Source: Octopus sinensis (Eukaryota). Taken from it: a stretch of 64,000 nucleotides of DNA. A program made the position numbers and the translations under genes. The DNA lies in NCBI RefSeq assembly GCF_006345805.1, contig NW_021832971.1, forward strand, positions 1 through 64,000, in the 5' to 3' direction. The notes beneath the pieces are model-generated. The model did not search any database. It saw nothing but the letters and a program-made list of their open reading frames with translations, and was not told the origin of the DNA. Positions within the stretch are counted from its first letter, which is position 1. Each line of letters begins with the position of its first letter. Shown piece by piece: positions 23,565 to 52,259 of the stretch.

Positions 23565-26500
23565 CTATAATGTTGTTGTTAGTTCTTTAGACTTTGCTGT
23601 TGCTATTGGTTCTTTAGCCTTTGGTGTTGTTATTGGTTCTTTAGCTTTGGTGTTGTTATTGGTTGTTTAGCCTTCGAGGTTGTTATTGGTTGTTTAGCCT
23701 TTGGTGTTGTTACTGGTACTTTAGCCTTTGGTGTTGTTATTGGTTCTTTAGCCTTTGGTGTTGTTATTGGTTCTTTAGCATTTGGTGTTGTTATTGGTTC
23801 TTTAGCCTTTGGTGTTATTATTGGTTCTTTAGCCTTCGGTGTCGTTATTGGTTCTTTAGCCTTTGGTGTTGTTATTGGTTCTTTAGACTTTGGTGTTGTT
23901 ATTGGTTCTTAGCCTTTGGTGTTGTTATTGGTTCTTTAGCCTTTGGTGTTGTTATTGGTTCTTTAGATTTTGGTGTTGTTATTGGTTCTTTAGCCTTTGG
24001 TGTTGTTATTGGTTCTTTAGCCTTTGGTGTTATTATTTGTTCTTTAGCCTTTGGTGTTGTTATTGGTTTTTTAGACTTTTCTGTTGTTATTGGTTCTTTA
24101 GACTTTGGTGTTGTTATTGGTTCTTTAGCCTTTGGTGTTGTTATTGGTTCTTTAGCCTTTGGTGTTGTTATTGGTTCTTTAGACTTTGGTGTTGTTATTG
24201 GTTCTTTAGCCTTTGGTGTTGTTATTGGTTCTTTAGCCTTTGGTGTTGTTATTGGTACTTTAGACTTTGGTGTTGTTATTGGTTCTTTAGACTTTTCTGT
24301 TGTTATTGGTTCTTTAGACTTTGGTGTTGTTATTGGTTCTTTAGCCTTTGGTGTTGTTATTGGTTCTTTAGCCTTTGGTGTTGTTATTGGTTCATTAGCC
24401 TTTGGTGTTGTTATTGGTTCTTTAGCGTTTGGTGTTGTTATTGGTTCTTTAGCCTTTGGTGTTGTTATTGGTTCATTAGCCTTTGGTGTTGTTATTGGTT
24501 CTTTAGCCTTTGGTGTTGTTATTGGTTTTTAGCCTTTGGTGTTGTTTTTGGTTATTTAGCCTTTGGTGTTGTTATTGGTTCTTTAGCCTTCGGTGTTGTT
24601 ATTGGTTCTTTAGCCTTTGGTGTTGTTATTGGTCTTTAGACTTTTGGTGTTATTGGTTCTTTAGCCTTTGGTGTTGTTATTGGTTCTTTAGCGTTTGGTG
24701 TTGTTATTGGTTCTTTAGCCTTTGGTGTTGTTATTGGTTCATTAGCCTTTGGTGTTGTTATTGGTTCTTTAGCCTTTGGTGTTGTTATTGGTTTTTAGCC
24801 TTTGGTGTTGTTTTTGGTTATTTAGCCTTTGGTGTTGTTATTGGTTCTTTAGCCTTCGGTGTTGTTATTGGTTCTTTAGCCTTTCGTGTTGTTATTGGTT
24901 CTTTAGACTTTGGTGTTGTTATTGGTTCTTTAGCCTTTGGTGTTGTCATTGGCTCTTTAGCCTTCGGTGTCGTTATTGGTTCTTTAGCCTTTGGTGTTGT
25001 TATTGGTTCTTTAGCCTTTGGTGTTGTTATTGGTTCTTTAGCCTTCGGTGTTGTTATTGGTTCTTTAGCCTTTGGTGTTGTTATTGGTTCTTTAGACTTT
25101 GGTGTTGTTATTGGTTCTTTAGCCTTTATGTTGTTATTGGTTCTTTAGCCATCGGTGTTGTTATTGGTTCTTTAGCCTTTGTGTTGTTATTGGTTCTTTA
25201 GCCTTTGGTGTTGTTATTGGTTCTTTAGACTTTGGAGTTGTTATTGGTTCTGTAGCCATCGGTGTTGTTATTGGTTCTTTAGCCTTTGGTGTTGTTATTG
25301 GTTCTTTAGCCTGCGGTGTTGTTATTGGTTCTTTAGCCTTTGGTGTTGTTATTGGTTCTTTAGCCTTTGGTGTTATTATTGGTTCTTTAGCCTTTGGTGT
25401 TGTTATTGGTTCTTTAGCCTTTGGTGTTGTTATTTGTTCTTTAGCCTTTGGTGTTGTTATTGGTTCTTTAGCCTTTGGTGTTGTTATTGGTTCTTTAGCC
25501 TTTTCTGTTGTTATTGGTTCTTTAGCCTTGGTGTTGTTATTGGTTCTTTAGCCTTTGTTGTTGTTATTGGTTCTTTACCCTTTGGTGTTGTTATTGGTTC
25601 TTTTAGCCTGGTGTTGTTATTGGTTCTTTAGCCTTGTCTGTTGTTATTGGTTCTTTAGACTTTGGTGTTGTTATTGGTTCTTTAGCCTTTTCTGTTGTTA
25701 TTGGTTCTTTAGCCTTTGATGTTGTTATTGGTTCTTTAGCCTTTGGCGTTGTTATTGGTGCTTTAGACTTTGGTGTTGTTATTGGTTCTTTAGCCTTCGG
25801 TGTTGTTATTGGTTCTTTAGCCTTTGGTGTTGTTATTGGTTCTTTAGCCTTTGGTGTTGTTATCGGTTCTTTAGCCTTTGGTGTTGTTATTGGTTCTTTA
25901 GCCTTTGGTGTTGTTACTGGTTCTTTAGCCTTTGGTGTTGTTATTGGTTTTTTAGCCTTTGGTGTTGTTATTGGTTCTTTAGCCTTTGGTGTTGTTATTG
26001 GTTCTTTTGCCTTTGTTGTTGTTATTGGTTCTTTAGCCTTCGGTTTTGTTATTGGTTCTTTAGCCTTTGGTGTTGTTATTGGTTCTTTAGCCTTTGGTGT
26101 TGTTATTGGTTCTTTAGCCTTTGGTGTTGTTATTGGTTCTTTAGCCTTTGTTGTTGTTATTGGTTCTTTAGCCTTTGGTGTTGTTATTGGTTCTTTAGCC
26201 TTTGTTGTTGTATTGGTTCTTTAGCCTTTGGTGTTGTTATTGGTTCTTTAGCCTTGGGTTGTTATTGGTTCTTTAGCCTTTCTGTTGTTATTGGTTTTTT
26301 AGCTTTGGTGTTGTTATTGGTTCTTTACCCTTTGGTGTTGTTATTGGTCTTTAGCCTTTGGTGTTGTATTGGTTCTTTAGCCTTTGGTGTTGTTATTGTT
26401 CTTTAGCCTTTTCTGTTGTTATTGGTTCTTTAGCCTTTGGTGTGTGTTGTTTGGTTCTTTAGCTTTGGTGTTGTTATTGGTTCTTTAGCCTTTGGTGTTG

Positions 26501-29500
26501 TTATTGGTTCTTTAGCCTTTGGTGTTGTTATTGTTCTTTAGCCTTTGGTGTTGTTATTGTTCTTTAGCCTTTGGTGTTGTTATTGGTTCTTTAGCCTTTG
26601 GTGTTGTTATTGGTTCTTTAGACTTTGGTGTGTTATTGGTTCTTTAGCCTTCGGTGTTGTTATGGGTCTTTAGCCTTTGGTGTTGTTATGGTCTTTAGCC
26701 TTCGGTGTTGTTATGGTTCTTTAGCCTTTGGTGTTGTTATTGGTTCTTTAGCCTTTGGTGTTGTTATTGGTTCTTTAGCCTTGGTGTTGATTGGTTCTTT
26801 AGCCTTTGGTGTTGTTATTGGTTCTTTAGCCTTTGGTGTTGTTATTGGTTCTTTAGCCTTCGGTGTTGTTATTGGTTCTTTACTCTTTGGTGTTGTTATT
26901 GGTTCTTTAGCCTTTGGTGTTGTTATTGGTTTAGCTTTGGTGTTGTTATTGGTCTTTAGCCTTTATGTTGTTATTGGTTCTTTAGCCTTTGATGTTGTTA
27001 TTGGTTCTTTAGCCTTTGGCGTTGTTATTGGTGCTTTTGCCTTTGGTGTTGTTATTGGTTCTTTAGCCTTCGGTGTTGTTATGGTTCTTTAGCCTTTGGT
27101 GTTGTTATTGGTTCTTAGCCTTTGGTTGTGTTATTGGTTCTTTAGCCTTGGTGTTGTTATTGGTTCTTTAGCCTTTGGTTGTTGTATTGGTTCTTTAGCC
27201 TTTGGTGTTGTTATTGGTTCTTTTGCCTTCGGTGTTGTTATTGGTTCTTTAGCCTTTGGTGTTGTTATTGGTTCTTTAGCTTCGTTGTTGTTATTGGTTC
27301 TTTAGCCTTTGGTGTTGTTATTGGTCTTTAGACTTTTCTCTTTGTTATTGGTTCTTTAGACTTTGGTGTTGTTATTGGTTCTTTAGCCTTGTGGTGTTAT
27401 TGGTTCTTTAGCCTTTGGTGTTGTTATTGGTTTCTTTAGCCTTTGGTGTTGTTATTGGTTCTTTAGCCTTTGGTTGTTATTGGTTCTTTAGCTTTGGTGT
27501 TGTTATTGGTTCTTTAGCTTTTCTGTTGTTATTGGTCTTTAGCCTTGGTGTTGTTATTGGTTCTTTAGCCTTTGGTGTTGTTATTGGTTCTTTAGCCTTT
27601 GGTGTTGTTATTGGTTCTTTAGCCTTTGTGTTTTATTGGTTCTTTAGCTTTGGTGTTGTTATTGGTTCTTTTAGCCTTTTCTGTTGTTATTGGTTCTTTA
27701 GCCTTTGGTTTTGTTATTGGTTCTTTAGCCTTTTCTGTTGTTATTGGTTCTTTAGCCTTTGATGTTGTTATTGGTTCTTTAGCCTTTGGCGTTGTTATTG
27801 GTGCTTTTGCCTTTGGTGTTGTTATTGGTTCTTTAGCCTTCGGTGTTGTTATTGGTTCTTTAGCCTTTGGTGTTGTTATTGGTTCTTTAGCCTTTGGTGT
27901 TGTTATTGGTTCTTTAGCCTTTGGTGTTGTTATTGGTTCTTTAGCCTTTGGTGTTGTTATTGGTTCTTTTGCCTTCGGTGTTGTTATTGGTTCTTTAGCC
28001 TTTGGTGTTGTTATTGGTTCTTTAGCCTTCGTTGTTGTTATTGGTTTTTAGCCTTGGTTTGTTATTGTTCTTTAGCTTTTCTGTTGTTATTGGTTCTTTA
28101 GCCTTTGGTTGTTGTGTTATTGGTTCTTACCTTTGTGTTGTTATTGGTTCTTTAGCCTTTGGTGTTGTTATTGGTTCTTTAGCCTTTGGTGTTGTTATTG
28201 GTTCTTTAGCCTTTGGTGTTGTTATTAGTTCTTTAGACTTTTTGTTGTTATTGGTTCTTTAGCCTTTGGTGTTGTTATTGGTTCTTTAGCCTTTGGTGTT
28301 GTTATTGGTTCTTTAGCCTTGGTGTTGTTATTGGTTCTTTAGCCTTTGGTGTTGTTATTGGTTCTTTAGCTTTGGTGTTGTTATTGGTCTTTAGCCTTGG
28401 TGTTGTTGTTATTGGTTCTTTAGCCTTTGGTGTTGTTATTGGTTCTTTAGCCTTTGGTGTTGTTATTGGTTCTTTAGACTTTCGTGTGTTATTGGTTCTT
28501 TAGCCTTTGGTGTTGTTATTGGTTCTTTAGCTTTTGGTGTGGTATTGGTTCTTTAGCCTTTGGTGTTGTTATTGGTTCATTAGCCTTTGGTGTTGTTATT
28601 GGTTCTTTAGCCTTTGGTGTTGTTATTGGTTTTTAGCCTTTGGTGTTGTTTTTGGTTCTTTAGCCTTTGGTGTTGTTATTGGTTCTTTAGCCTTCGGTGT
28701 TGTTATTGGTTCTTTAGCCTTTCGTGTTGTTATTGGTTCTTTAGACTTTGGTGTTGTTATTGGTTCTTTAGCCTTTGGTGTTGTTATTGGTTCTTTAGCC
28801 TTCGGTGTTGTTATTGGTTCTTTAGCCTTTGGTGTTGTTATTGGTTCTTTAGCCTTTGGTGTTGTTATTGGTTCTTTAGCCTTCGGTGTTGTTATTGGTT
28901 CTTTAGCCTTTGGTGTTGTTATTGGTTCTTTAGACTTTGGTGTTGTTATTGGTTCTTTAGCCTTTATGTTGTTATTGGTTCTTTAGCCATCGGTGTTGTT
29001 ATTGGTTCTTTAGCCTTTGTGTTGTTATTGGTTCTTTAGCCTTTGGTGTTGTTATTGGTTCTTTAGACTTTGGAGTTGTTATTGGTTCTGTAGCCATCGG
29101 TGTTGTTATTGGTTCTTTACCTTTGTGTGTTGTTTTGGTTCTTTAGCCTGCGGTGTTGTTATTGGTTCTTTAGCCTTTGGTGTTGTTATTGGTTCTTTAG
29201 CCTTTGGTGTTATTATTGTTCTTTATTAGCCTTTGGTGTTGTTATTGGTTCTTTAGCCTTTGGTGTTGTTATTTGTTCTTTAGCCTTTGGTGTTGTTATT
29301 GGTTCTTTAGCCTTTGTGTGTTTTATTGGTTCTTTAGCCTTTTTTGTTGTTATTGGTTCTTTAGCCTTTGGTGTTGTTATTGGTTCTTTAGCCTTTGTGT
29401 TGTTATTGTTCTTTCTTTACCCTTGGTGTGTTATTGGTTCTTTAGCCTTGGTGTTGTTATTGGTTATTTGTTCTTTAGCCTTAGCCTTCTGTTGTGTTAT

Positions 29501-32500
29501 TGGTTCTTTAGCCTTTGGTGTTGTATTATTGGTTCTTTAGCCTTGGTCTGTTGTTTTGTTCTTTAGCCTTTGATGTTGTTATTGGTTCTTTAGCCTTTGG
29601 CGTTGTTATTGGTGCTTTAGGACTTTGGTGTTGTTATTGGTTCTTTAGCCTTCGGTGTTGTTATTGGTTCTTTAGCCTTTGGTGTTGTTATTGGTTCTTT
29701 AGCCTTTGGTGTGGTTTCGGTTTTTAGCCTTTGGTGTTGTTATTGGTTCTTTAGCCTTTGGTGTTGTTATTGGTTCTTTAGCCTTTGGTGTTGTTATTGG
29801 TTCTTTAGCCTTTGGTGTGTGTTATTGTGTCTTTAGCCTTTGGTGTTGTTATTGGTTCTTTTGCCTTTGGTGTTGTTATTGGTGTCTTTAGCCTTCGTTT
29901 TGTTATGGTTCTTTAGCCTTTGGTGTGTTATTGGTTCTTTAGCCTTTGGTGTTGTTATTGGTTCTTTAGCCTTTGGTGTTGTTATTGGTTCTTTAGCCTT
30001 TTTTGTTGTTATTGGTTCTTTAGCCTTTGGTGTTGTTATTGTTCTTTAGCCTTTGTGTTGTTATGGTTCTTTAGCCTTTGGTGTTGTTATTGGTTCTTTA
30101 GCCTTTGGTGTTGTTATTGGTTCTTTAGCCTTTTTTGTTGTTATTGGTTTTTTAGCTTTGGTGTTGTTATTGGTTCTTTACCCTTTGGTGTTGTTATTGG
30201 TTCTTTAGCCTTTGGTGTTGTTATTGGTTCTTTAGCCTTTGGTGTTGTTATTGTTCTTTAGCCTTTTCTGTTGTTATTGGTTTTTAGCCTTTGGTTGTTG
30301 TATTGGTTCTTTAGCCTTTGGTGTTGTTATTGGTTCTTTAGCCTTTGGTGTTGTTAGTGGTTCTTTAGCCTTTGGTGTTGTTATTGTTTCTTTAGCCTTT
30401 GGTGTTGTTATTTGTTCTTTAGCCTTTGGTGTTGTTATTGGTTCTTTAGCCTTTGGTGTTGTTATTGGTTCTTTAGCCTTTGGTGTTGTTATTGGTTCTT
30501 TAGCCTTCGGTGTTGTTATTGGTTCTTTAGCCTTTGGTGTTGTTATTGGTTCTTTAGCCTTCGGTGTTGTTATTGGTTCTTTAGCCTTTGGTGTTGTTAT
30601 TGGTTCTTTAGCCTTTGGTGTTGTTATTGGTTCTTTAGCCTTTGGTGTTGTTATTGGTTCTTTAGCCTTTTGTGTTGTTATTGGTACTTTAGCCTTTGGT
30701 GTTGTTATTGGTTCTTTAGCCTTCGGTGTTGTTATTGGTTCTTTACCCTTTGGTGTTGTTATTGGTTCTTTAGCCTTTGGTGTTGTTATTGGTTCTTTAG
30801 CCTTTGGTGTTGTTATTGGTTCTTTAGCCTTTTCTGTTGTTATTGGTTCTTTAGCCTTTGATGTTGTTATTGGTTCTTTAGCCTTTGGCGTTGTTATTGG
30901 TGCTTTTGCCTTTGGTGTTGTTATTGGTTCTTTAGCCTTCGGTGTTGTTATTGGTTCTTTAGCCTTTGGTGTTGTTATTGGTTCTTTAGCCTTTGGTGTT
31001 GTTATTGGTTCTTTACCTTCGTTGTTGGTTATTGGTTCTTTAGCCTTTGGTGTTGTTATTGTTTTTCTTTAGCCTTGGTGTTGTTATTGGTTCTTTAGCC
31101 TTTTCTCTTGTTATTGGTTCTTTAGCCTTTGGTGTTGTTATTGGTCCTTAGCCTTTGGTGTTGTTATTGGTTCTTCAGCCTTTGGTGTTGTTATCGGTTC
31201 TTTAGCCTTTGGTGTTGTTATTGGTTCTTTAGCCTTTGGTGTTGTTATTGGTTCTTTAGCCTTTGGTGTTGTTATTGGTTCTTTAGCCTTTGGTGTTGTT
31301 ATTGGTTCTTTAGCCTTTGGTGTTGTTATTGGTTCTTTAGCCTTTGGTGTTGTTATTGGTTCTTTAGCCTTTAGTGTTGTTATTGGTTCTTTAGCCTTTA
31401 ATGTTGTTATTGGTTCTTTAGCCTTTGGTGTTGTTATTGGTTCTTTTGCCTTTTCTGTTGTCATTGGTTCTTTAGCCTTTGGTTTTGTTATTGGTTCTTT
31501 AGCCTTTGTTGTTGTTATTGGTTCTTTAGCCTTTGGTGTTGTTATTGATTCTTTAGCCTTTGGTGTTGTTATTGGTTCTTTAGCCTTTGGTGTTATTATT
31601 GGTTCTTTAGCCTTTGGTGTTGTTATTGGTTCTTTAGCCTTTGGTGTTGTTATTTGTTCTTTAGCCTTTGGTGTTGTTATTGGTTCTTTAGCCTTTGGTG
31701 TTGTTATTGGTTCTTTAGCCTTTTCTGTTGTTATTGGTTCTTTAGCCTTTGGTGTTGTTATTGGTTCTTTAGCCTTTGGTGTTGTTATTGGTTCTTTACC
31801 CTTTGGTGTTGTTATTGGTTCTTTAGCCTTTGGTGTTGTTATTGGTTCTTTAGCCTTTTGTGTTGTTATTGGTTCTTTAGCCTTTGGTGTTGTTATTGGT
31901 TCTTTAGCCTTTTGTGTTGTTATTGGTTCTTTAGCCTTTGATGTTGTTATTGGTTCTTTAGCCTTTGGCGTTGTTATTGGTGCTTTAGCCTTTGGTGTTG
32001 TTATTGGTTCTTTAGCCTTCGGTGTTGTTATTGGTTCTTTAGCCTTTGGTGTTGTTATTGGTTCTTTAGCCTTTGGTGTTGTTATTGGTTCTTTAGCCTT
32101 TGGTGTTGTTATTGGTTCTTTAGCCTTTGGTGTTGTTACTGGTTCTTTAGCCTTTGGTGTTGTTATTGGTTCTTTAGCCTTTGGTGTTGTTATTGGTTCT
32201 TTAGCCTTTGGTGTTGTTATTGGTTCTTTAGCCTTTGGTGTTGTTATTGGTTCTTTAGCCTTCGGTGTTGTTATTGGTTCTTTAGCCTTTGGTGTTGTTA
32301 TTGGTTCTTTAGCCTTTGGTGTTGTTATTGGTTCTTTAGCCTTTTTTGTTGTTATTGGTTCTTTAGCCTTTGGTGTTGTTATTGGTTCTTTAGCCTTTGT
32401 TGTTGTTATTGGTTCTTTAGCCTTTGGTGTTGTTATTGGTTCTTTAGCCTTTGGTGTTGTTATTGGTTCTTTAGCCTTTTCTGTTGTTATTGGTTCTTTA

Positions 32501-35184
32501 GCCTTTGGTGTTGTTATTGGTTCTTTACCCTTTGGTGTTGTTATTGGTTCTTTAGCCTTTGGTGTTGTTATTGGTTCTTTAGCCTTTGGTGTTGTTATTG
32601 GTTCTTTAGCCTTTTCTGTTGTTATTGGTTCTTTAGCCTTTGGTGTTGTTATTGGTTCTTTAGCCTTTGGTGTTGTTATTGGTTCTTTAGCCTTTGGTGT
32701 TGTTAGTGGTTCTTTAGCCTTTGGTGTTGTTATTGTTTCTTTAGCCTTTGGTGTTGTTATTGGTTCTTTAGCCTTTGGTGTTGTTATTGGTTCTTTAGCC
32801 TTTGGTGTTGTTATTGGTTCTTTAGCCTTTGGTGTTGTTATTGGTTCTTTAGCCTTCGGTGTTGTTATTGGTTCTTTAGCCTTCGGTGTTGTTATTGGTT
32901 CTTTAGCCTTTGGTGTTGTTATTGGTTCTTTAGCCTTTGGCGTTGTTATTGGTTCTTTAGCCTTTGGCGTTGTTATTGGTTCTTTAGCCTTTGGTGTTGT
33001 TATTGGTTCTTTAGCCTTTGGTGTTGTTATTGGTTCTTTAGCCTTGGTGTTGTTACTGGTTCTTAGCTTTGGTGTTGTTATTGGTTCTTTAGCCTTTGGT
33101 GTTGTTATTGGTGTTGTTGTATTGGTTCTTTAGCCTTTGGTGTTGTTATGGTTCTTTAGCCTTGGTGTTGTTATTGGTTCTTTAGCCTTCGGTGTTGTTA
33201 TTGGTTCTTTAGCCTTTGGTGTTGTTATGGTTCTTTAGCCTTTGGTGTTGTTATTGGTTCTTTAGCCTTTTCTGTTGTTATTGGTTCTTTAGCCTTTGGT
33301 GTTGTTATTGGTTTTTTAGCCTTTGGTGTTGTTATTGGTTCTTTAGCCTTTGGTGTTGTTATTGGTTCTTTAGCCTTTGGTGTTGTTATTGGTTCTTTAG
33401 CCTTTGGTGTTGTTATTGGTTCTTTAGCCTTTTCTGTTGTTATTGGTTCTTTAGCCTTTGGTGTTGTTATTGGTTCTTTAGCCTTCGGTGTTGTTATTGG
33501 TTCTTTAGCCTTTGGTGTTGTTATTGTTTCTTTAGCCTTTGGTGTTGTTATTGGTTCTTTAGCCTTTGGTGTTGTTATTGGTTCTTTAGCCTTTTGTGTT
33601 GTTATTGGTTCTTTAGCCTTTGGTGTTGTTATTGGTTCTTTAGCCTTCGGTGTTGTTATTGGTTCTTTAGCCTTTGGTGTTGTTATTGGTTCTTTAGCCT
33701 TCGTGTTGTTATTGGTTCTTTAGCCTTTGGTGTTGTTATTGGTTCTTTAGCCTTTGGTGTTGTTATTGGTTCTTTAGCCTTTGGTGTTGTTATTGGTTCT
33801 TTAGCCTTTTGTGTTGTTATTGGTTCTTTAGCCTTTGGTGTTGTTATTGGTTCTTTAGCCTTCGGTGTTGTTATTGGTTCTTTAGCCTTTGGTGTTGTTA
33901 TTGGTTCTTTAGCCTTTGGTGTTATTATTGGTTCTTTAGCCTTTGGCGTTGTTATTGGTTCTTTAGCCTTTGGTGTTGTTATTTGTTCTTTAGCCTTTGG
34001 TGTTGTTATTGGTTCTTTAGCCTTTGGTGTTGTTATTGGTTCTTTAGCCTTTTCTGTTGTTATTGGTTCTTTAGCCTTTGGTGTTGTTATTGGTTCTTTA
34101 GCCTTTGGTGTTGTTATTGGTTCTTTACCCTTTGGTGTTGTTATTGGTTCTTTAGCCTTTTGTGTTGTTATTGGTTCTTTAGCCTTTGGTGTTGTTATTG
34201 GTTCTTTAGCCTTTTCTGTTGTTATTGGTTCTTTAGCCTTTGATGTTGTTATTGGTTCTTTAGCCTTTGGCGTTGTTATTGGTGCTTTAGCCTTTGGTGT
34301 TGTTATTGGTTCTTTAGCCTTCGGTGTTGTTATTGGTTCTTTAGCCTTTGGTGTTGTTATTGGTTCTTTAGACTTTTCTGTTGTTATTGGTTCTTTAGCC
34401 TTTGGTGTTGTTATTGGTTCTTTAGCCTTTGGTGTTGTTACTGGTTCTTTAGCCTTTGGTGTTGTTATTGGTTCTTTAGCATTTGGTGTTGTTATTGGTT
34501 CTTTAGCCTTTGGTGTTGTTATTGGTTCTTTAGCCTTTGGTGTTGTTATTGGTTCTTTAGCCTTCGGTGTTGTTATTGGTTCTTTAGCCTTTGGTGTTGT
34601 TATTGGTTCTTTAGCCTTTGGTGTTGTTATTGGTTCTTTAGCCTTTGGTGTTGTTATTGGTTCTTTAGCCTTTTTTGTTGTTATTGGTTCTTTAGCCTTT
34701 GGTGTTGTTATTGGTTCTTTAGCCTTTGGTGTTGTTATTGGTTCTTTAGCCTTTGGTGTTGTTATTGGTTCTTTAGCCTTTTGTGTTGTTATTGGTTCTT
34801 TAGCCTTTGGTGTTGTTATTGGTTCTTTAGCCTTTGGTGTTGTTATTGGTTCTTTAGCCTTTGGTGTTGTTATTGGTTCTTTAGCCTTTGGTGTTGTTAT
34901 TGGTTCTTTAGCCTTTGGTGTTGTTATTGGTTCTTTAGTTTTCTGTGTTGTTATTGGTTCTTTAGCCTTTGGTGTTGTTATTGGTTCTTTAGCCTTCGTT
35001 GTTGTTATTGGTTCTTTAGCCTTTGGTGTTGTTATTGGTTCTTTAGCCTTTGGTGTTGTTATTGGTTCTTTAGTTGTGACTGTTGTTGTTGGTTCTTCAA
35101 TTGTGACTTTTGTTGTTGGTTCTTCAGTCGTGGCTGTTGTTGTTAATTCTTCAGTCGTGCCTGTTGTTGTTTGTTCTACAGTAT
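23565..35184 (-). CDS. Mucin-like gene, giant exon of ~425 tandem TTPKAKEPI repeats ending at the first in-frame TAG
   Basis: tttttacag|AT ACT GTA GAA CAA... (phase 1), four TTEE-type units, then the 27-bp array to ~23583; TAG at 23567-23565. Many 1-2 nt indels in the array (likely assembly errors) break the frame as given. Confidence 0.7.
23583..35072 (-). repeat. 27-bp coding minisatellite (plus-strand consensus ttagcctttggtgttgttattggttct), ~425 copies
   Basis: Directly visible; ~11.5 kb divided by 27 bp. Confidence 0.97.
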
Positions 35185-35357
35185 CTGTAAAAATATAATG
35201 CATGTTACACAATCTGTATTTCTAGAGCGTATCACACGTTTATGTTTTATTGGGAGTGGTAACTCTCACTGATACATTGTTGTGTCGAAATTCACTATAA
35301 ATCATATGATACTAAGAAATTTAAATTGTCGTTGTATTTGTAGTAGTTGTTGTTGTA

Positions 35358-35390
<33 letters not shown>

Positions 35391-35559
35391 TTAGTATTAG
35401 TAGTAGTAGTAGTGGCAGTAGTAGTAGTAGAAGGAGAGGAGGAGGAGGAGGAGGAGGAGTTCATTTCTTTGTTGTTGCCTTTGAAATATGTTATCGTTTT
35501 ATCCTGTTAAAAGTTACTGTGAAAGAATGTAATACATCTGTTCCAATCTTTGCACTTAC

Positions 35560-35687
35560 TTTCGAAATTCACTTTCGTCTTTTCTCCTATTACACCTGTA
35601 ATATTATTCATGGTTTCGCGGACAATCTCTACCTGGGGATCTGCACGTTTGAATTCCATAATCAGGTCTGCAATCAGGCTACCGTTT
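35560..35687 (-). CDS. Mucin-like gene, exon encoding the C-terminal part of SEA domain 2 (R-NGSLIADLIMEFKRADPQVEIVRETMNNITGVIGEKTKVNFE)
   Basis: tcttgatttcag|A AAC GGT AGC...TTC GAA A|gtaagt; 128 nt, phase 2 to 1. GSLIAD matches the SEA GS-V/I-V/I autoproteolysis motif. Confidence 0.85.
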
Positions 35688-36497
35688 CTGAAATCAAGAA
35701 AGATAATCTTTACTAACTGCACGTGCATTTTACGAGAATTTGCAGAACTTTGTGCAATAACAGAAATCACCAGCTGAGATTTTCTCTCAACTCTGTTCAT
35801 AAAATCCCTCTTGGTTTACCTCTTTATGAATCAGTGCAACGCTGCGTGATCTCCACCCTACATCGTTGAACAGGGCCTCTGCCGCACTTCAGAGAGCTAA
35901 GCAAATCCAGTTGAGAATGCAGACAAACCCTTGCCAGAGATTTTTATTGCTAGAGAGCCATACGTATGGCAGTAGAATTCTCTCGTAGATTTTGATTCTT
36001 TAAAAAATCGCCTGAAGATTTTGCGCTTTCTCTTCCTTTTATGCAAACTATCAAATTCAGCCTGAACGTCCAGAACATTCACACACGCTTCTACTTCCCT
36101 ATCACTTGCTGGGGGTCACTTGATTTTCACGACTATGCCAAACATCAATATTTTTTCCAATTGCCCATTCACTTCCCTATAACAGCCTCTAACAACCCGC
36201 TTCGTTGCGCACCAACTGTCGACAGTGTGTTCTCATTTGTGAATTCCTTAATTCCCTCCAACATGTGTCCACGAAACTTTCCTTGACCGCTTTTCCATCA
36301 GCTCTAATATACTCCCTGCCATCGCTTGCATTTCTCATCTGTTTGCTTCTCCTTATAACAAAGAAAGACTCATCGACACACATGATATTCAGTTTCATTA
36401 CCCTTCCATATCTGCACATATGTGTCAGCCACAAAATATTCTGTGACATATTGTCGAATAATCGCTGACACCTCTAAAGAAGAAAGTCTATAATACT

Positions 36498-36540
<43 letters not shown>

Positions 36541-36585
36541 TGTAATTGAACCGTATATAAAAGAGATATCACCGATAGAACTGAC

Positions 36586-36653
36586 CTTAATTGTGTAACA
36601 TTATTGCCAAGATATGTGTCCGCCAACTCACTGTTTTCCATAGATTCATCGAC
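36586..36653 (-). CDS. Mucin-like gene, exon encoding the middle part of SEA domain 2 (VDESMENSELADTYLGNNVTQL-R)
   Basis: gtgtttttag|GTC GAT...TTA AG|gtcagt; 68 nt, phase 0 to 2; joins both neighbouring exons in frame. Confidence 0.8.
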
Positions 36654-38366: not shown

Positions 38367-38423
<57 letters not shown>

Positions 38424-38515
38424 CAATATTATTATTATTATTATTATTATTATATTATTATTATTATTATTATTATCATAATTAGTATTATTATTATTAT
38501 TATTTTTATTATTAT
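38296..38515. repeat. (TAT)n microsatellite
   Basis: Directly visible. Confidence 0.97.
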
Positions 38516-39110: not shown

Positions 39111-39382
39111 TATATACATATATATATACATAAATATATTACGTATATATATACACATGTATATATACGTATATATATATATATGTAAGTATATGTATAT
39201 GAAAATTTTCTTTCCGTTATCATAAAACTATTGTTACAAATGATGCAATGAACGCAGGACTATGCTCCTGAAAGTAAGGTGCATGTGGCGGCGTTCTCTC
39301 ACACAATTTGCCGTCGGAGATACAACTCACCACCTAATAATCGTGTTCCGAAAACACAAACCAGTGATCTGGTACATTAGGG

Positions 39383-39390
39383 ATAGATAT

Positions 39391-39466
<76 letters not shown>

Positions 39467-39468
39467 AC

Positions 39469-39538
<70 letters not shown>

Positions 39539-39540
39539 AC

Positions 39541-39599
<59 letters not shown>

Positions 39600-39600
39600 C

Positions 39601-39645
<45 letters not shown>
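39383..39645. repeat. (GATA)n tract at the 3' junction of the Tx1 element
   Basis: Directly visible. Confidence 0.97.
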
Positions 39646-41571
39646 TGTTTCTTTATTAGCCACACAGGGCTGCACACAGATAGAACAAATTACAAGGTAG
39701 AGCTTTTCTTTTGAAGATAAAAAAAAGGGGGGGTGTTCGATCAAAAGGGATCGTAAAAGGAGAGAAAGAGGACAAAAAAGGGGGGTTAAAAAAAGGGGGA
39801 GAAGAAAAAATTGATCAATATGGATCGTTATCACAGAAGTGTCAATATGAAGTGTAAAGGGGAGGACAGGTGAGGTTTACCCGTGGAAAGAAAAGCCTAC
39901 GGAAAAGACCACGGTAACCTCGGTCAATGAAGTCACATGTTATATTTATTTCTTTTATTTTTTTTTTTTTGCAAATAAGCAACTCTCTGTATTAATTTTT
40001 ATGGTTCATAGAATCATAGTCAAGGTGGCTTCGTCATTCATACGTGCCATCCTTGCTACATTCACCCATCTTTTTTTAAAACATTCACTAGACAAAACCT
40101 GCCTCTCTACTCTCACTTTCCTCCTCAACAGATACATTCTTTCGCCATAGCCACAAGTATGATAAAAATAGCTCTTCCTTCCCGTTTGAAGGAAGGAGGC
40201 GTGACGATATTAACGATAGACTCGGCTGGTAAACCGACACGTGACAGCAGTCGTTCGACATAAGCCCACAGGTGGGAAATTGCTGGACACTGCACGATTG
40301 CGTGCAGAGCGGTTTCGTCGCTCTGCCCACATCTCGGGCAGGTCGGCCCCGTGTTTCTCGAGCCATGCCTATAGAGCTTATCCCGAACGGGTAGCGCTTC
40401 TCGGTAGCACCGCCAGGCCAGGGATCTCTGGAAGTTGTCCATAGGTCCCGGGCCGAAAGTCGTTTGAAACAGGCGGGTCAGGTATTCCTCGTCGACGCTC
40501 AGGTTTGCCCCGAGCTCGTCGTCGTACCTCCCCTCCACTAAGCCCCTATAGAATGCTTTGGTTGTGTTGAAGTCACTTAAGGTCGACCCAGGACGGCAGA
40601 GTTGCTTGAGAGCAACGCGACACTCGCGGTGCCATTCGCCCTTCCTCGGCTCTTTTTGATCCACGACTGCAGTTCGGTCATGGAGACGAGCTGCGGAAAG
40701 CGTGCCTCACAAACGGCGACCACACCTGTTCACCATCGTCTACATAGAGCCAGAGATGTCGCAGTCTCAGCGCGTGTCTGCGCATCATCAACCACGGCAT
40801 GCCCAGCCCTCCTTTTAACGGGTGTTGACAGCAAATGGATCGCCTGACCATCGGGACGCATCCTTTCCACAAGAAGCGAAAGAGAATGCGTTGTAGTTTG
40901 GTGATGGTAGGGTCGGGACAAGGTACGACGGTCAGGCGGTAGTAGATGACGAACGCGATGTACGTGTTCGCCACCTCCGCTCGACCTTTTAGGGACAGTT
41001 TCCTCTCGGCCCATTGCCGGCGAGAGTGACCACCCTACTCGTTATCTCGTTCCAGTTCTTCTCCACTTGGAGGTCCGGACCAAACCAGACCCCGAGCAAC
41101 TCAACCGGGCCGTCGGTCCAGCGTCCCACGACGGAGGCGCTGGTGGACGGCATGGGCTTGCTTCTCCAGGTGCCTAGTCGCAAGCCCACTGACTTTTCCC
41201 GGTTGATTTTCGCTCCTGTCACCGCTTTGTAGTTTTTCAGTGTCTCGCCGACCAGCTCGATGTGCTCGTGGCTAGACACTATGACGGTGACGTCGTCCGC
41301 GTATGCAGACACGCTCGTCCCGCATCCCAATTCTCGGGGGATGCCCCTTATTGTCGCCAGCTTCCGCAGTAGTGGCTCAAGAGTCAATACGTATAGAAGC
41401 GCCGAGAGGGGGCATCCCTGACGGACCGAACGTGCAATGTCGAAAGGTCTCGATAGATGTCCATTTACGCGAATTAAATGGACATCTATCGAGACCTTTC
41501 GACATTGCACGTTCGGTCCGTCAGGGATGCCCCCTCTCGGCGCTTCTATACGTATTGACTCTTGAGCCACT

Positions 41572-41572
<1 letters not shown>
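39646..41572 (-). mobile_element. 5'-truncated Tx1/L1-clade LINE inserted in a (GATA)n microsatellite
   Basis: RT motifs [16 protein letters not shown] and AYADDVTV; C-terminal CPRCGQSDETALHAIVQC zinc-knuckle. The 3' end ...gctAATAAAgaaacat runs directly into (ATCT)n, and (GATA)n lies at both junctions. Confidence 0.9.
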
Positions 41573-41648
<76 letters not shown>

Positions 41649-41665
41649 CAGATAGATAGATAGAC

Positions 41666-41709
<44 letters not shown>

Positions 41710-41765
41710 TGATAGATAGATAGATAGATAGATAGATTGATAGATAGATAGATAGATAGACAGAC

Positions 41766-41857
<92 letters not shown>
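41573..41857. repeat. (GATA)n tract at the 5' junction of the Tx1 element
   Basis: Directly visible. Confidence 0.97.
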
Positions 41858-42972
41858 TACAAATGTGGAGAATAATAGTATTTTCAAATCTACATATGTG
41901 TGTTTTCTAAAGAATTTAATTTTCGATCTGATGTGATGGTCGGAATCATAGAGCAAAGGATATCGACACAACACACACACACACACACACATACACACAC
42001 ACTCAAACAGAAACACACAGACACACATACATATATATAAATATATGTATGTATGCATAAATACGTGTGTGTTTACATATATATATAAAACGGCAGAGAG
42101 ACAGAGAGAGAGAAGGAGCGAAAGACGGAGCAAATAATATAAGTGTTTATGAATATTATTATATATGTATGTTATCATTATATATGTCTAAGTATATAAT
42201 TATACGGTGGCAAGGATCCTCTAAATTCACGCCATGCAATACTGATGATTATGATGCACTACAGAAAAGGAGACGAGACCATTACACAGGACGCTCCTCT
42301 GTCGTCCAATAAAAACTTACCTCCAGTTCTCGCCTCTATTAACGTTTAGTGCAGAAGCGATCAACTACAACAAATGTAATACCTTTCCAAAGACATTTAA
42401 AGCACCGACTGCTGCCAGAATGGAGCAGATCAACAAAAGATCAACAGTTGATCAGAAAAATATCGCCAAAGGTAAAAGCAAATACTCAAACACACCGACA
42501 GAGCAATACTTAGGAAGAAATGCACGGAGTTACCTGTTCAGTCCCCTTCGGCAGGCAAAGCTTCGTACTTCTATTATTGCAGTGAACTGAATAAGCGATT
42601 CAGTAATGATTCTTACTTGGATATTATGGAGACTACTAGATGTATTCATGTAGCTATTAGTGTCTATGTATTAAGAGACCAGTGTTTACCTGTATCTAAT
42701 TGTAATACTGTGTTTTTGGAAATGGGTTTCATTCAACATCATTATGCATGTCACAACCTCAATATTTACGATAATAGTTACGTTGAAAAACAATTCCATT
42801 CTGTATTTCCAGCCAAGGCGATTTCACGTCGACACGATCGTTCATGTTTCACATTCTTCGAGATTGAATCAAGCAAGACACACCAATCGATGTCAGGATG
42901 TGAGAGATGTCAGAATCTGATCGTTGCAAAAAGAATTTGGAGAGAAGATGTTGCAGAGACTAAAACACTTAC

Positions 42973-45900
42973 CTGTTGTCGTTGGTTCTTCAGTTGTGAC
43001 TGTTGTTGTTGGTTCTTCAGTTGTTACTGTTGTTGTTGGTTCTTCAGTTGTGACTGTTGTCGTTGGTGCTGCGCTGCTGCTACTGCTTGGTTGTTCCGTT
43101 GTTGTTGTTGTCGGTGGTTGCTCAGTTATTGCTTTTGTTGGTCTCACATTTGCTGTTCTTGATTGACCAATTGTTGTTGTTGGTTCTTCAGTTGTGACTG
43201 TTGTTGTTGGTTCTTCAGTTGTGACTGTTGTTGTTGGTCCTTCAGTTGTGACTGTCGTTGTTCGTCCTTCAGTTGTGACTGTCGTTGTTGGTTCTTCAGT
43301 TATGACTGTTGTTGTTGGTTCTTCAGTTGTGACTGTTGTTGTTGGTCCTTCAGCTGTGACTGTTGTTGTTGGTCCTTCAGTTGTGACTGTTGTTGTTGGT
43401 CCGTCAGTTGTGACTGTTGTTGTTGGTTCTTCAGTTGTGGCTGCTGTTGTTAGTTCTTCAGTTGTGACTGTTGTTGGTTCTTCAGTTGTGACTGTTGTTG
43501 GTTCTTCAGTTGTGACTGTTGTTGGTTCTTCAGTTGTTACTGTTGTTGTTGGTCCTTCAGTTGTTACTGTTGTTGTTGGTTCTTCACTTGTGGCTGTTGT
43601 TGTTGGTCCTTCAGTTGTGACTGTCGTTGATTCTTCAGTTGTGGCTGCTGTTGTTGATTCTTCAGTTGTGACTGTTGTTGGTTCTTCAGTTGTTACTGTT
43701 GTTGTTGGTTCTTCAGTTGTTACTGTTGTTGTTGGTTCTTCAGTTGTGGCTGTTGTTGTTGGTTCTTCAGTTGTGACTGTTGTTGTTGGTTCTTCACTTG
43801 TGGCTGTTGTTGTTGGTCCTTCAGCTGTGACTGTCGTTGGTTCTTCAGTTGTGACTGTTGTTGGTTCTTCATTTGTGACTGTTGTTGTTAGTTCTTCAGT
43901 TGTGACTGTTGTTGTTGGTCCCTCAGTTGAAGCTGTTGTTGTTGGTTCTTCGGTTGTTACAGTTATTGTTGGTTCTTCAGTTGTGGCTGCTGTTGTTGGT
44001 TCTTCTATTGTGACTGTTGTTGTTGGTTCTTCAGTTGTGGCTGTTGTTGTTGGTTCTTCAGTTGTGGCTGTTGTTCTTAGTTCTTCTATTGTGACTGCTG
44101 TTGATGATTCTTCAGTTGCGACTGCTGTTGATGATTCTTCAATTGTAACTGTTGTTGTTGGTTCTTCAGTTGTGACTGTTGTTGTTGGCTCTTCAGTTGT
44201 GACTGTTGTTGTTGGTTCTTCAGTTGTGACTGCTGTTGTCGGTTCTTCAGTTGTGACTGTTGTTGTTGGCTCTTCAGTTGTGACTGTTGTTGTTGGTTCT
44301 TCAGTTGTGGCTGCTGTTGTTGGTTCTTCTATTGTGACTGTTGTTGTTGGTTCTTCAGTTGTGGCTGTTGTTCTTAGTTCTTCTATTGTGACTGCTGTTG
44401 ATGATTCTTCAGTTGCGACTGCTGTTGATGATTCTTCAATTGTAACTGTTGTTGTTGGTTCTTCAGTTGTGACTGTTGTTGTTGGCTCTTCATTTGTGAC
44501 AGTTGTAGTTGGTTCTTCAGTTGTGACTGTTGTTGTTGGTTCTTCAGTTGTGACTGTTGTTGTCGGTTCTTCAGTTGTGACTGTTGTTGTTGGCTCTTCA
44601 GTTGTGACTGTTGTTGTTGGTTCTTCAGTTGTGGCTGTTGTTGTTGGTTCTTCAGTTGTGGCTGTTGTTCTTAGTTCTTCTATTGTGACTGCTGTTGATG
44701 ATTCTTCAGTTGCGACTGCTGTTGATGATTCTTCAATTGTAACTGTTGTTGTTGGTTCTTCAGTTGTGACTGTTGTTGTTGGCTCTTCAGTTGTGACTGT
44801 TGTTATTGGTTCTTCAGTTGTGACTGCTGTTGTCGGTTCTTCAGTTGTGACTGTTGTTTTTGGCTCTTCAGTTGTGACTGTTGTTGTTGGTTCTTCAGTT
44901 GTGGCTGCTGTTGTTGGTTCTTCTATTGTGACTGTTGTTGTTGGTTCTTCAGTTGTGGCTGTTGTTGTTGGTTCTTCAGTTGTGGCTGTTGTTCTTAGTT
45001 CTTCTATTGTGACTGCTGTTGATGATTCTTCAGTTGCGACTGCTGTTGATGATTCTTCAATTGTAACTGTTGTTGTTGGTTCTTCAGTTGTGACTGTTGT
45101 TGTTGGCTCTTCATTTGTGACAGTTGTATGTAGTGGTCTTCAGTTGTGACTGTTGTTGTTGGTCTTCAGTTGTGACTGTTGTTGTCGGTTCTTCAGTTGT
45201 GACTGTTGTTGTTGGCTCTTCAGTTGTGACTGTTGTTGTTGGTTCTTCAGTTGTGGCTGTTGTTGTTGGTTCTTCAGTTGTGGCTGTTGTTCTTAGTTCT
45301 TCTATTGTGACTGCTGTTGATGATTCTTCGGTTGCGACTGCTGTTGATGATTCTTCAATTGTAACTGTTGTTGTTGGTTCTTCAGTTGTGACTGTTGTTG
45401 TTGGTTCTTCAGTTGTGACTGCTGTTGTCGGTTCTTCAGTTGTGACTGTTGTTGTTGGCTCTTCAGTTGTGACTGTTGTTGTTGGTTCTTCAGTTGTAAC
45501 TGTTGCCGTTGGTTCTTCAGTTGTGACTGTTGTTGGTTCTTCAGTCGTAACAGTTGTTGTTGGTTCTTCAGCTGTGACTGTTGTTGAAGGTTCTTCAGTT
45601 GTGACTGTTGTTGTTGGTTCTTCAGTTGTAACTGTTGTTGTTGGCTCTTCAGTTGTGACTGTTGTTGGTTCTTCAGTTGCGACTGTTGTTGTTGGTTCTT
45701 CAGTTGTAACAGTTGTTGTTGGTTCTTCACTTGTGACTGTTGTTGTTGGTTCTTCAGTTGCGACTGTTGTTGTTGGATCTTCAGTTGAAACTGTTGTTGT
45801 TCGTTCTTCACTTGTGACTGTTGTTGTTTGTTCTTCAGTTGTGACTGTTGTTGTTGGTTCTTCAGTTGTAACTGTTGTTGTTGGTTCTTTACTTGTGACA

Positions 45901-47101
45901 GTTGTTGTTGGTTCTTTAGCCTTCGGTGTTGTTATTGGTTCTTTAGCCTTTGGTGTTGTTATTGGTTCTTTAGCCTTTGGTGTTGTTATTGGTTCTTTAG
46001 CCTTTGGTGTTGTTATTGGTTCTTTAGATTTTGGTGTTGTTATTGGTTGTTTAGCCTTTGGTGTTGTTATTGGTTGTTTAGCCTTTGGTGTTGTTATTGG
46101 ATCTTTAGCCTTTGGTGTTGTTATTGGTTCTTTAGCCTTTGGTGTTGTTATTGGTTCTTTAGCCTTTGGTGTTGTTATTGGTTCTTTAGCCTTTGGTGTT
46201 GTTATTGGTTCTTTAGCCTTTCCTGTTGTTATTGGTTCTTTAGACTTTGGTGTTGTTATTGGTTCTTTAGCCTTTGGTGTTGTTATTGGTTCTTTAGCCT
46301 TTGGTGTTGTTATTGGTTCTTTAGCCTTTGGTGTTGTTATTGGTTCTTTAGACTTTGGTGTTGTTATTGGTTCTTTAGCCTTTGGTGTTGTTATTGGTTC
46401 TTTAGCCTTTGGTGTTGTTTTTGGTTCTTTAGCCTTTGGTGTTATTATTGGTTCTTTAGCCTTTGGTGTTGTTTTTGGTTCTTTAGCCTTTGGTGTTGTT
46501 TTTGGTTCTTTAGCCTTTGGTGTTGTTATTGGTTCTTTAGCCTTTGGTGTTGTTATTGGTTCTTTAGCCTTTGGTGTTGTTATTGGTTCTTTAGACTTTG
46601 GTGTTGTTATTGGTTCTTTAGCCTTTGGTGTTGTTATTGGTACTTTAGACTTTGGTGTTGTTATTGGTTCTTTAGACTTTTCTGTTGTTATTGGTTCTTT
46701 AGACTTTGGTGTTGTTATTGGTTCTTTAGCCTTTGGTGTTGTTATTGGTTCTTTAGCCTTTGGTGTTGTTATTGGTTCTTTAGCATTTACTGTTGTTGTT
46801 GTTCCTTTGGTTGTTACTCTTGTTGTTTCTGGTTCCTTGGTTTTTCGTGTTGTAGGTTTTTCAACCTTTGCTGTTGTTGGTACTGTTGTTACTGAAGTTG
46901 TTGGTTGTTCAGTTGTTGCTTCTGTTCCTGTTTGATCTCTGGTTGCTCTCCCTGGTGTTGGCTTGTTTGTCTTGTTTTCTTGTTCTCTTGTTGTGTTTTG
47001 TTCACTTGTTTTTGTGTCTTTTACTCTTGTTGTTCCTAGTGCAGTTGCTTTCGTTGGTCGTGTAGTTGTTGTTCTTGTCTCTCTACTTGAATTGTCTTTT
47101 C
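42973..47101 (-). CDS. Mucin-like gene, large PTS exon: unique T/K/E-rich leader, ~33x TTPKAKEPI, ~100x TTVTTEEPT-type repeats
   Basis: ttctag|GA AAA GAC AAT TCA... to ...ACA ACA G|gtaagt, phase 1 to 1. Length 4129 = 3n+1; the extra base is accounted for by a local +2/-1 glitch at ~45125-45165, otherwise the frame appears open (1376 codons once corrected). Confidence 0.85.
43170..45909 (-). repeat. 27/24-bp coding minisatellite encoding TTVTTEEPT variants, with a 297-bp higher-order unit
   Basis: Plus-strand unit ggttcttcagttgtgactgttgttgtt. The variant block gttcttagttcttctattgtg recurs at 44073, 44370, 44667, 44991 and 45289. Confidence 0.95.
45910..46785 (-). repeat. Second array of the same 27-bp TTPKAKEPI unit, ~32-33 copies
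   Basis: Directly visible. Confidence 0.95.
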
Positions 47102-50984: not shown

Positions 50985-51953
50985 CTGTGGAAATAAAAAG
51001 GAAATTAAATTGTATTTGCTATGAAAATTGTTTTATAAAATTGTTACTTTTGTTTTTAACTCATATTTTTTTCAGGTGGTAACTTAAACCGGTTTTGCTC
51101 TTAGTCCGCATTGCAACACAGAAATGTGAGGCTCTGGATGGACACATAAAAATGCGATTGCTTGAATATGCATGGACACTCTCTGATGACACTCTCCTGC
51201 CAAAGACCATCGAGCTACCCCCAGACGTGTACCCCATTTGTAGAGGCAGAAGTGAAAGGAGCTTAATTCGACTTGTCTAATTATAATACTGACCTGAGAT
51301 AAATAGATACAGTTGTTATATGCAATATGGATGAAGTAATAATATTTTCTTTATTGGAATGAATATGTGCAAGGACCGAAATTTAGTTTACACATGGATC
51401 TGTGTTGTTTTTTTAATCATGCCCCAGGCATTTGTATTATTGTTCTTGTTTTCTGTCCCGAAATTTTGGTTATTCCCTATTTCCAGATCTAAATACCTGG
51501 ATACTTTCTCCATTTCCTTTAGAATTATATGATCAAAAGGGCGATACGATAAGGAGGCACTTCCTTTCTTGCGGCACTTGTTAACAATATCTGATTGATT
51601 AATCTTGATCTTCTTGTATGAAGTACTCTATCCCAGACTATGTTTGATTTGTCAATTTCTAGGACTTTTGTAGGACGTTTCCTTAATTCCAGTGTAAGTA
51701 AACTCAGATTCTTTTATGCATGCGGATGTATTTCCTCTTGATTTAGACTGGAGAGTCAAAGGCGATGGAATTAAATGCTTCTTTCCGACTCCCATATATT
51801 TTAGTTTTACATTTACTTTATTATGTGTCTTTGGTAGTTTCTGGTATGGAGGCTTTGATTTAGAAAACTCTTTTCTTCCTTTCATTCAGGGCGTCTGTTT
51901 TTCTTGTCAAATATTCATCATGTACGGGTTTTCTTATCCTAGTTTAAGCATCA

Positions 51954-52025
<72 letters not shown>

Positions 52026-52036
52026 TGATAATAATA

Positions 52037-52067
<31 letters not shown>

Positions 52068-52188
52068 TGGTGATGATGATTATTTCAAATTTTACCACAA
52101 GGGCGTGTGTGCGTACGCGCGCGCATGGAGGGTGAGAGCATAAATTTCAAGCCTTACAAAACAACTAATAATCATGAAAAATACTTAC

Positions 52189-52259
52189 CGAAGCTCAGTG
52201 ACCGAACTACCCGTGTAAAGTAGATTTAGTACGGAGTTTTTCTTTATTGCGTTGTCAAT
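52189..52259 (-). CDS. Mucin-like gene, exon encoding the middle part of SEA domain 1 (IDNAIKKNSVLNLLYTGSSVTEL-R)
   Basis: ttctag|ATT...CTT CG|gtaagt; 71 nt, phase 0 to 2. Clearly paralogous to the 36586-36653 exon (VDESMENSELADTYLGNNVTQL-R). Confidence 0.8.

Follow-up and report, generated by a model that had tools for sequence, protein, structure and literature searches.

A mis-modelled SEA-type mucin-like membrane protein gene with giant repeat exons in Octopus sinensis

Exons, SEA domains and membrane anchor

The window analysed here comprises positions 1-64000 of the unplaced 84,502-bp contig VCDQ01004812.1 (GCA_006345805.1) of Octopus sinensis, and its subject is a gene on the minus strand annotated by NCBI as LOC115229658, 'uncharacterized protein'. 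LOC115229658 is a real, mis-modelled gene for a cephalopod-restricted, SEA-type, mucin-like membrane protein, whose giant size is conceptual. An earlier note had described the interval 23565-52259 as a likely unannotated or mis-annotated mucin gene. The gene is in fact annotated; the second part of the claim stands, as the 414-aa NCBI model XP_029655839.2 removes both repeat arrays and the models of Octopus vulgaris are fragments. In gene order the exons would encode a cytoplasmic N-terminus, a signal-anchor helix, a three-exon SEA domain (SEA1), a 4.1-kb repeat exon of the proline, threonine and serine (PTS) type (PTS1), a second three-exon SEA domain (SEA2) and an 11.6-kb repeat exon (PTS2).

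The plus strand at ~20-47 kb is strongly T/G-rich, with an AT skew down to -0.76; the complementary minus strand, rich in A and C, translates into Thr, Pro, Lys and Glu. The list of open reading frames (ORFs) over the interval holds chiefly antisense plus-strand frames rich in Val, Gly, Phe and Cys, as had been noted. The list misses the Thr/Pro frames because ATG, GTG and TTG starts are nearly absent there; a stop-to-stop scan reveals them.

Eight minus-strand exons have canonical borders. Seven of them were predicted with GT-AG sites in the earlier note and all exist, six of their borders being used also by the independent model XP_029655839.2. The eighth is the first SEA1 exon, which the note had not found and which lies outside its interval. 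This exon, SEA1a (62544-62426, phase 1 to 0, xDPVKRTMNVDLYFNETYKKEYADPENKLTIEKRREITEK), was located by tblastn through its 40% identity to SEA2a; it has splice sites and is present in XP_029655839.2, so that the NCBI model agrees. SEA1b (52259-52189, IDNAIKKNSVLNLLYTGSSVTEL-R) runs from phase 0 to 2 between tctag and GTAAGT, and SEA1c (50984-50830, KGSILAKMQLEFES...CILWE-G), which carries a G|S motif, from phase 2 to 1 between ccacag and GTAAGT. The peptide spliced from the SEA1 exons matches XP_029655839.2 with 100% identity. In the second module, SEA2a (38244-38132, GVTSLVNVEMHLNEEYKAIYSDLNNAETQTKVAEISAK) runs from phase 1 to 0 between ctacag and GTAAGA, SEA2b (36653-36586, VDESMENSELADTYLGNNVTQL-R) from phase 0 to 2 between ttttag and GTCAGT, and SEA2c (35687-35560, NGSLIADLIMEFKR...KVNFE-N), again with a G|S motif, from phase 2 to 1 between tttcag and GTAAGT. 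With SEA1a added, the proposed module of three SEA exons and a giant PTS exon is present twice. The local phases are those noted earlier, with the reservation that the 1-1 phase of PTS1 is true only at its exon ends, a net frameshift lying inside.

Another segment, 38060-37902 ('...LLYRGSYVDLNF'), is SEA-like (20.7 bits) and was considered as SEA2 exon b; it has no usable donor, and mapping of XP_029655839.2 gave 36653-36586 instead. Microsatellites are found near the SEA exons: (TAC)n/(TAT)n runs flank SEA1a (~62330-62640), a long (ATT)n/(AAT)n tract occupies intronic positions 51940-52090, ~100 nt downstream of the SEA1b donor, and another (38293-38516) lies just upstream of the SEA2a acceptor.

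Splicing is required to detect the SEA domains. No SEA domain came out of a Pfam scan of 35150-39000 in three unspliced frames. The spliced SEA1 and SEA2 peptides match Pfam SEA (PF01390) with 31.7 bits (E 1.8e-7) and 34.5 bits (E 2.3e-8), both above the gathering cut-off of 26.4 bits, in the HMMER comparison that had been named beforehand as a check of the two domains. The AlphaFold2 model of SEA2, built on an 18-sequence SEA alignment of the gene family and distant relatives, has a mean pLDDT of 90.5 and the order beta1-alpha1-beta2-beta3-alpha2-beta4. The G-S pair forms the sole invariant columns of the alignment and sits in the turn joining the two central strands of the model (beta2-beta3). 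Its seven best fold matches in the Protein Data Bank are all SEA domains (query-normalised TM-score 0.64-0.84), and the fold matches include TMPRSS6, MUC16 SEA5, a mouse transmembrane-protease (HAT-like) SEA domain (2e7v) and murine MUC16 (1ivz). SEA1 shows the SEA-type order of elements too in the whole-protein AlphaFold model (pLDDT 75-88), and structure prediction thus bears out both domains. By sequence, the family profile matches the SEA chains of ADGRF1, TMPRSS11D and MUC1.

The annotated N-terminus is encoded at contig positions 68426-68148 and ~83090, 4-19 kb past the right end of the window. It comprises ~68 hydrophilic residues followed by LVLVGIILLLLALAAGLITTIILL. The signal peptide, thought earlier merely to have escaped detection, is absent from it, and its place is taken by a cytoplasmic tail and a signal anchor. 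Residues 75-93 are the sole strongly hydrophobic stretch of XP_029655839.2, with a mean Kyte-Doolittle hydropathy of 2.97 over 19 residues and five Lys or Arg residues just upstream; AlphaFold places a helix at 66-95, and SEA1 begins six residues after the stretch. Since there is no signal peptide and the anchor helix precedes SEA1, the helix is read as a type II signal anchor and the whole SEA-PTS-SEA-PTS chain as extracellular. Of the two locations proposed earlier, secreted or cell-surface, the evidence favours a membrane-bound protein and not a secreted one.

Two other octopus proteins, XP_014774196.2 of O. bimaculoides and the O. sinensis paralog XP_036368988.1, share both the layout of tail, anchor and SEA domain and a conserved TPFWPFxFxDPT motif; the paralog bears the name 'serine-rich adhesin for platelets-like' and contains a TDQTSTT array. 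Argonauta hians proteins have the layout without the motif, and the SEA and PTS models of Sepia pharaonis lack the tail-anchor N-terminus. A HMMER search of 1.84 billion representatives gave 14 matches at E<=1e-3. Outside cephalopods, cyprinid multi-SEA proteins and a type II SEA-EGF protein of a starfish matched, with 25-32% identity across the stretches that align. As far as HMMER detects, the family thus appears to be restricted to cephalopods.

The giant repeat exons

PTS1 (47101-42973, acceptor ttctag, donor GTAAGT) measures 4129 nt, or ~1376 aa conceptually, and PTS2 (35184-23569, acceptor tttacag, phase 1 start) measures 11616 nt as assembled, or ~3872 aa conceptually. These are the sizes that had been estimated earlier (~1376 and ~3870 aa), and the earlier end of the interval at 23565 is close to the TAG at 23571-23569 that the Thr/Pro frame of PTS2 reaches. 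Both the acceptor and the donor of PTS1 join the neighbouring SEA exons in the Thr/Pro frame. PTS1 begins with ~110 unique Thr-rich residues, followed by PITTPKAKE units and then by EEPTTTVTT units; Tandem Repeats Finder called a 27-nt array of ~144 copies at 42973-46827. The distal part contains 46% Thr, 4% Ser and 9% Pro. A single net frameshift lies at 45165-45114, where a 26-nt and a 29-nt unit are followed by a TGA. The 5' frame extends for 662 codons and the 3' frame covers the final 722, with the first stop at conceptual residue 778. Off-length anchor spacings in PTS1 are most commonly in frame (24 nt, five times; 51 nt, three times). Synonymous changes are enriched among the PTS1 repeats (0.47 observed vs. 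0.28 expected), a comparison in which the repeat copies are not independent.

The start of PTS2 joins SEA2c in the Thr/Pro frame. A few EEPTTTVTT-like units precede ~430 copies of the 27-nt unit GAACCAATAACAACACCAAAGGCTAAA (EPITTPKAK, or PITTPKAKE in the other register), and Tandem Repeats Finder called this 27-nt array at 23433-35097 with ~434 copies. The composition is 22-24% Thr and 17-19% Pro, with Ser almost nil. Spacings between GAACC anchors are 27 nt in 278 cases, 26 nt in 26, 25 nt in five, 28 nt in one and 29 nt in two. None of the 278 full-length units contains an in-frame stop. Among the 26-nt variants, those that shorten AAA to AA, GG to G, AA to A or CC to C are the most frequent, and the frame steps are mainly -1. 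Frame switches are few at 35.2-30.3 kb and occur once per 50-150 nt at 30.3-26.2 kb. Joined end to end, the eight exons comprise 5,466 conceptual codons, and straight translation gives 418 stops.

We infer that the frame breaks are long-read consensus errors rather than decay. They are judged technical because they are mainly 1-nt deletions, many of them at short homopolymers, with steps mostly of -1, and because the near-identical units would have kept short-read polishing from placing its reads, the worst stretch lying midway along the array, where unique anchors are most distant. The O. sinensis assembly probably rests on older PacBio continuous long reads, in which the errors that remain are chiefly deletions in homopolymers.

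XP_029655839.2 treats the arrays differently. It keeps 33 PTS1 residues and then uses a GTGAAC donor at 47006/47005 to reach SEA2a (38244), and it keeps 34 PTS2 residues before a GTCACA donor at 35081/35080 leads to an acceptor near 29516, which is purine-rich upstream and has no pyrimidine tract. If this 414-aa product were essentially right, the gene would encode a small type II protein made of two SEA domains plus short Thr-rich linkers; the arrays would then be intronic minisatellites removed by splicing. The removal of the arrays by the model, their broken frames and the absence of the PITTPKAKE array from the database proteins searched agree with such a product. However, the two internal donors and the purine-rich acceptor look like devices to avoid frameshifts, the arrays are bounded by strong canonical sites in the Thr/Pro frame, and the model ends within the array at a stop made by a frameshift (29419-29417), with no 3' exon. 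In addition, the array periods in the family are all multiples of three (27, 27 and 21 nt here, 24 nt in the paralog). We regard the short product as improbable, and the in-array introns would represent the gene modeller stepping over frameshifts.

In O. vulgaris, the array after SEA2 consists of 179 EEPTTTVTT units; along its 4.8 kb the Thr/Pro frame shifts only twice, and the array ends at a TTG|gtaagtg donor identical to that of O. sinensis. The giant repeat exons are very probably coding. With a probability of about two in three, the interval holds most of one minus-strand gene for a single-pass, type II, mucin-like membrane glycoprotein of more than 5,000 aa, both giant exons being translated.

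Several observations weigh against so large a translated product. The earlier note had taken the PTS exons as open frames, which they are not as assembled: the 4129 nt of PTS1 equal 1 mod 3 where 0 is needed, owing to its one net shift and attended by the TGA, and the Thr/Pro frame of PTS2 switches 58 times. The reading frame is not intact in the assembly, and the figure of more than 5,000 aa is conceptual. The codon-position test of PTS2 showed no third-position excess (66/62/67) and no synonymous signal, the repeat copies again not being independent. Thr and Ser together make up ~23% of PTS2, which is under the usual mucin-domain composition; mucin predictions look for a repeat domain that contains Pro and about 40% or more of Ser plus Thr. 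The PITTPKAKE array occurs in no protein among 5.8 billion clusters. Searches of databases for transcripts that join the arrays to SEA2 or contain PITTPKAKE returned known fragment models only, a weak negative, as low-complexity proteins filled the candidate lists. In the two SEA domains, G-S is followed by ILA and LIA instead of the classical VVV (G|S[V/I]VV), which makes self-cleavage uncertain as judged from the motif. Finally, the contig is unplaced and its array lengths may be wrong.

Related loci, neighbouring elements and annotations

A related locus on O. sinensis chromosome CM016882.1 (L002) has at least two SEA2-like modules, a 27-nt array of ~109 copies and, at L002 13205-27699, a 14.5-kb array of a 24-nt unit (EQPTTTTT) in ~620 copies. 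It is annotated only as the 196-aa XP_036368970.1. The 3' flank of L002 is 98-99% identical to window 14186-7798. The locus was considered as an allelic copy of the gene; the flanks are nearly identical as stated, but the module order and the 24-nt EQPTTTTT array differ. The contig of the window may be an allele or a paralog of the CM016882.1 locus, or a version of it that is in part mis-assembled.

The chromosomal locus bears on two further explanations. The gene of the window could be a decaying duplicate, a pseudogene or degenerate haplotig with intact SEA exons and truly frameshifted repeat exons, the functional copy residing on CM016882.1. Its placement on an unplaced 84.5-kb piece and the related multi-module chromosomal locus with such similar flanks are consistent with a duplicate. 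So is a third PTS-like region (20580-23568, minus strand), which has a degenerate 21-nt unit (TPAEQPT; array called at 20580-22956 by Tandem Repeats Finder) and, unlike both 27-nt arrays, real in-frame TAA and TAG nonsense substitutions along with frameshifts; it is probably a decayed array or repeat exon, or a 3' untranslated region. However, 1-nt deletions make up most of the breaks in the Thr/Pro frame, many of them at short homopolymers (26 units of 26 nt vs. one of 28 nt), and the breaks cluster midway in the most homogeneous array, which is the pattern of consensus error and not of neutral decay. The splice sites of all eight exons and both SEA frames are intact, and the full-length PTS2 units contain no stop-creating substitutions. 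Decay of this copy seems hardly more probable than the short product.

In the other explanation, the gene is real and its size is an assembly artefact, with the copy numbers (~430 and ~145), and even the order of the modules, mis-estimated, so that the figure of more than 5,000 aa could not be quoted. Among the full-length PTS2 units, 153 of 278 are identical, and the 11.6-kb array is comparable in length to typical long reads of the older kind. The module orders and array types differ at the chromosomal locus and in O. vulgaris, and the exon-1 region is present at both ends of the contig. Nothing was counted against an artefact of size, which is a distinct possibility, somewhat short of an even chance; it is compatible with a translated giant gene and alters its numbers only.

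The second copy of coding exon 1 lies at 2897-2883 on the minus strand, where ATGGCATACCGACAG (MAYRQ) is followed by a GTAAAT donor; the copy is exact, including the donor (2877-2897). It sits in a block, 1191-3784, that matches the 5' end of the gene itself, at the opposite end of the contig, with 93-98.6% identity. To judge from this sequence match, a head-to-tail tandem paralog starts at this copy and continues beyond the first base of the contig. In O. vulgaris, the sequence upstream of the gene is that found downstream of the gene in the O. sinensis window, from which the genes are taken to form a head-to-tail cluster. A non-LTR retrotransposon at window 4290-6786 on the minus strand (RVT_1, 104.5 bits, and an endonuclease domain) is found also at the matching site upstream of the O. 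vulgaris gene (L001 5229-9082).

A candidate terminal coding exon at 14089-13834 on the minus strand (TLHDNGTAHGTDRMETQ...NHLYSA*) has a strong acceptor and a TGA end, and the last exon of the paralog model XP_036368970.1 matches it at 99% identity. Just upstream of the candidate exon, at 14371-14617, lies a 32-nt repeat that is rich in GAG and GAA on the plus strand. The intron between PTS1 and SEA2a contains a minus-strand fragment of a non-LTR retrotransposon (40128-41906; RVT_1, zf-RVT), which is outside the product and is flanked by (GATA)n microsatellites at 39382-39645 and 41572-41857. The same intron of O. vulgaris contains a long reverse-transcriptase-like ORF (L004 454-2931), and that of L002 is much shorter.

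The orthologous O. vulgaris locus (GCA_951406725.2, OX597837.1) is split among several models. CAI9740437.1 covers SEA1 and reads through into the intron, and CAI9740435.1 covers SEA2. Over the Thr/Pro arrays lie antisense calls of 2698 aa (L001 55857-59511, minus strand) and 1507 aa (L004 13083-17958, minus strand) in frames rich in Val, Ser, Cys and Phe; a 2925-aa sense-strand model begins after the latter, at L004 18149. The masking by antisense ORFs thus generalises from the ORF list to real annotations. Three octopus assemblies annotate the family only as fragments of 90-414 aa, and O. vulgaris also as large antisense 'genes'. Work on proteomes or expression that relies on the current annotations will therefore miss or mis-assign the family.

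Comparison with known mucins and SEA proteins

The octopus protein is SEA-mucin-like, yet it fails the type I topology, one defining feature of these mucins. It resembles the vertebrate SEA-type membrane mucins (MUC1, MUC3/12/17, MUC13 and MUC16) in its giant, probably coding tandem-repeat Thr/Pro exon, in a SEA domain beside the membrane anchor and in the G-S turn at the position of autoproteolysis, and it resembles MUC16 in SEA domains that alternate with PTS linkers. The vertebrate proteins are type I: they start with a signal peptide and carry the transmembrane segment and tail at the C-terminus, whereas the octopus protein has an N-terminal anchor and a C-terminal brush. A profile search of 1.84 billion representatives detected no orthology to vertebrate mucins. 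SEA-type mucin genes are typically under-assembled and mis-annotated (PMC9578598).

As the SEA domains of membrane mucins fold, they cleave themselves at the G-S turn; the parts stay non-covalently associated, and mechanical force is needed to separate them (PMC9578598, PMC10556640). By analogy, the G-S turn of each octopus SEA domain probably self-cleaves. Together with translation and glycosylation of the arrays, we infer from this the following mode of action. O-glycosylation in the Golgi would turn the Thr-Thr-Pro-rich units into a dense, extended extracellular brush. Once SEA1 is cleaved, the membrane would retain its first half together with the tail and the anchor helix, and the second half and all distal parts would be releasable, with SEA2 as a second break point. 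The brush would then be held non-covalently on a membrane stub and shed under mechanical load, as in vertebrate SEA mucins, in a mirrored topology.

In topology, the protein resembles the type II transmembrane serine proteases (HAT/TMPRSS11D, TMPRSS6 and enteropeptidase), which share the cytoplasmic tail, signal anchor and juxtamembrane SEA domain and are among the best sequence and fold matches. They differ in what follows, as the octopus SEA domain precedes giant PTS arrays. No protease or other catalytic domain was found in XP_029655839.2 (Pfam: SEA only) or in the frames and ORFs scanned, the scan of the window being not exhaustive.

The repeat itself resembles that of lubricin (PRG4). The KEPITTPKA of the octopus arrays and the O-glycosylated KEPAPTTP of lubricin have a similar composition and a similar Lys/Glu/Pro/Thr-Thr-Pro pattern; the lubricin repeats are O-glycosylated and of reported polyproline-II character (PMC12262190). 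The likeness suggests that the octopus arrays may form an extended, polyproline-II-like, glycosylated lubricant brush. Unlike the octopus protein, lubricin is secreted, has somatomedin-B and hemopexin domains and is without a SEA domain or a membrane anchor; the likeness is compositional and not one of homology. Pfam found no somatomedin-B or hemopexin domain in XP_029655839.2. The order of SEA domain, mucin-like region and SEA domain is shared with IMPG1 and IMPG2, which are vertebrate proteins with EGF-like domains and far shorter mucin regions, IMPG2 being type I.

These comparisons lead to a broader and distinctly tentative proposal, which we hold to be well short of even odds. Cephalopods may have independently evolved SEA-type mucins of type II in a tandem gene cluster, in which a self-cleaving SEA domain holds a multi-thousand-residue, lubricin-like chain as a force-releasable, lubricating glycocalyx of the skin, suckers or gut, missed by all current octopus annotations. 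A literature search with octopus, mucin and SEA domain found no paper on a cephalopod SEA-type mucin, and the origin of SEA-type membrane mucins has been placed in vertebrates (PMC9578598). Octopus skin, suckers, gut and eggs rely on mucus and on slippery or sticky surfaces. If the arrays are translated, the locus and its paralogs would represent an invertebrate, probably convergent counterpart of the vertebrate SEA-type mucins, with the opposite orientation in the membrane and with a repeat that is compositionally near that of lubricin.

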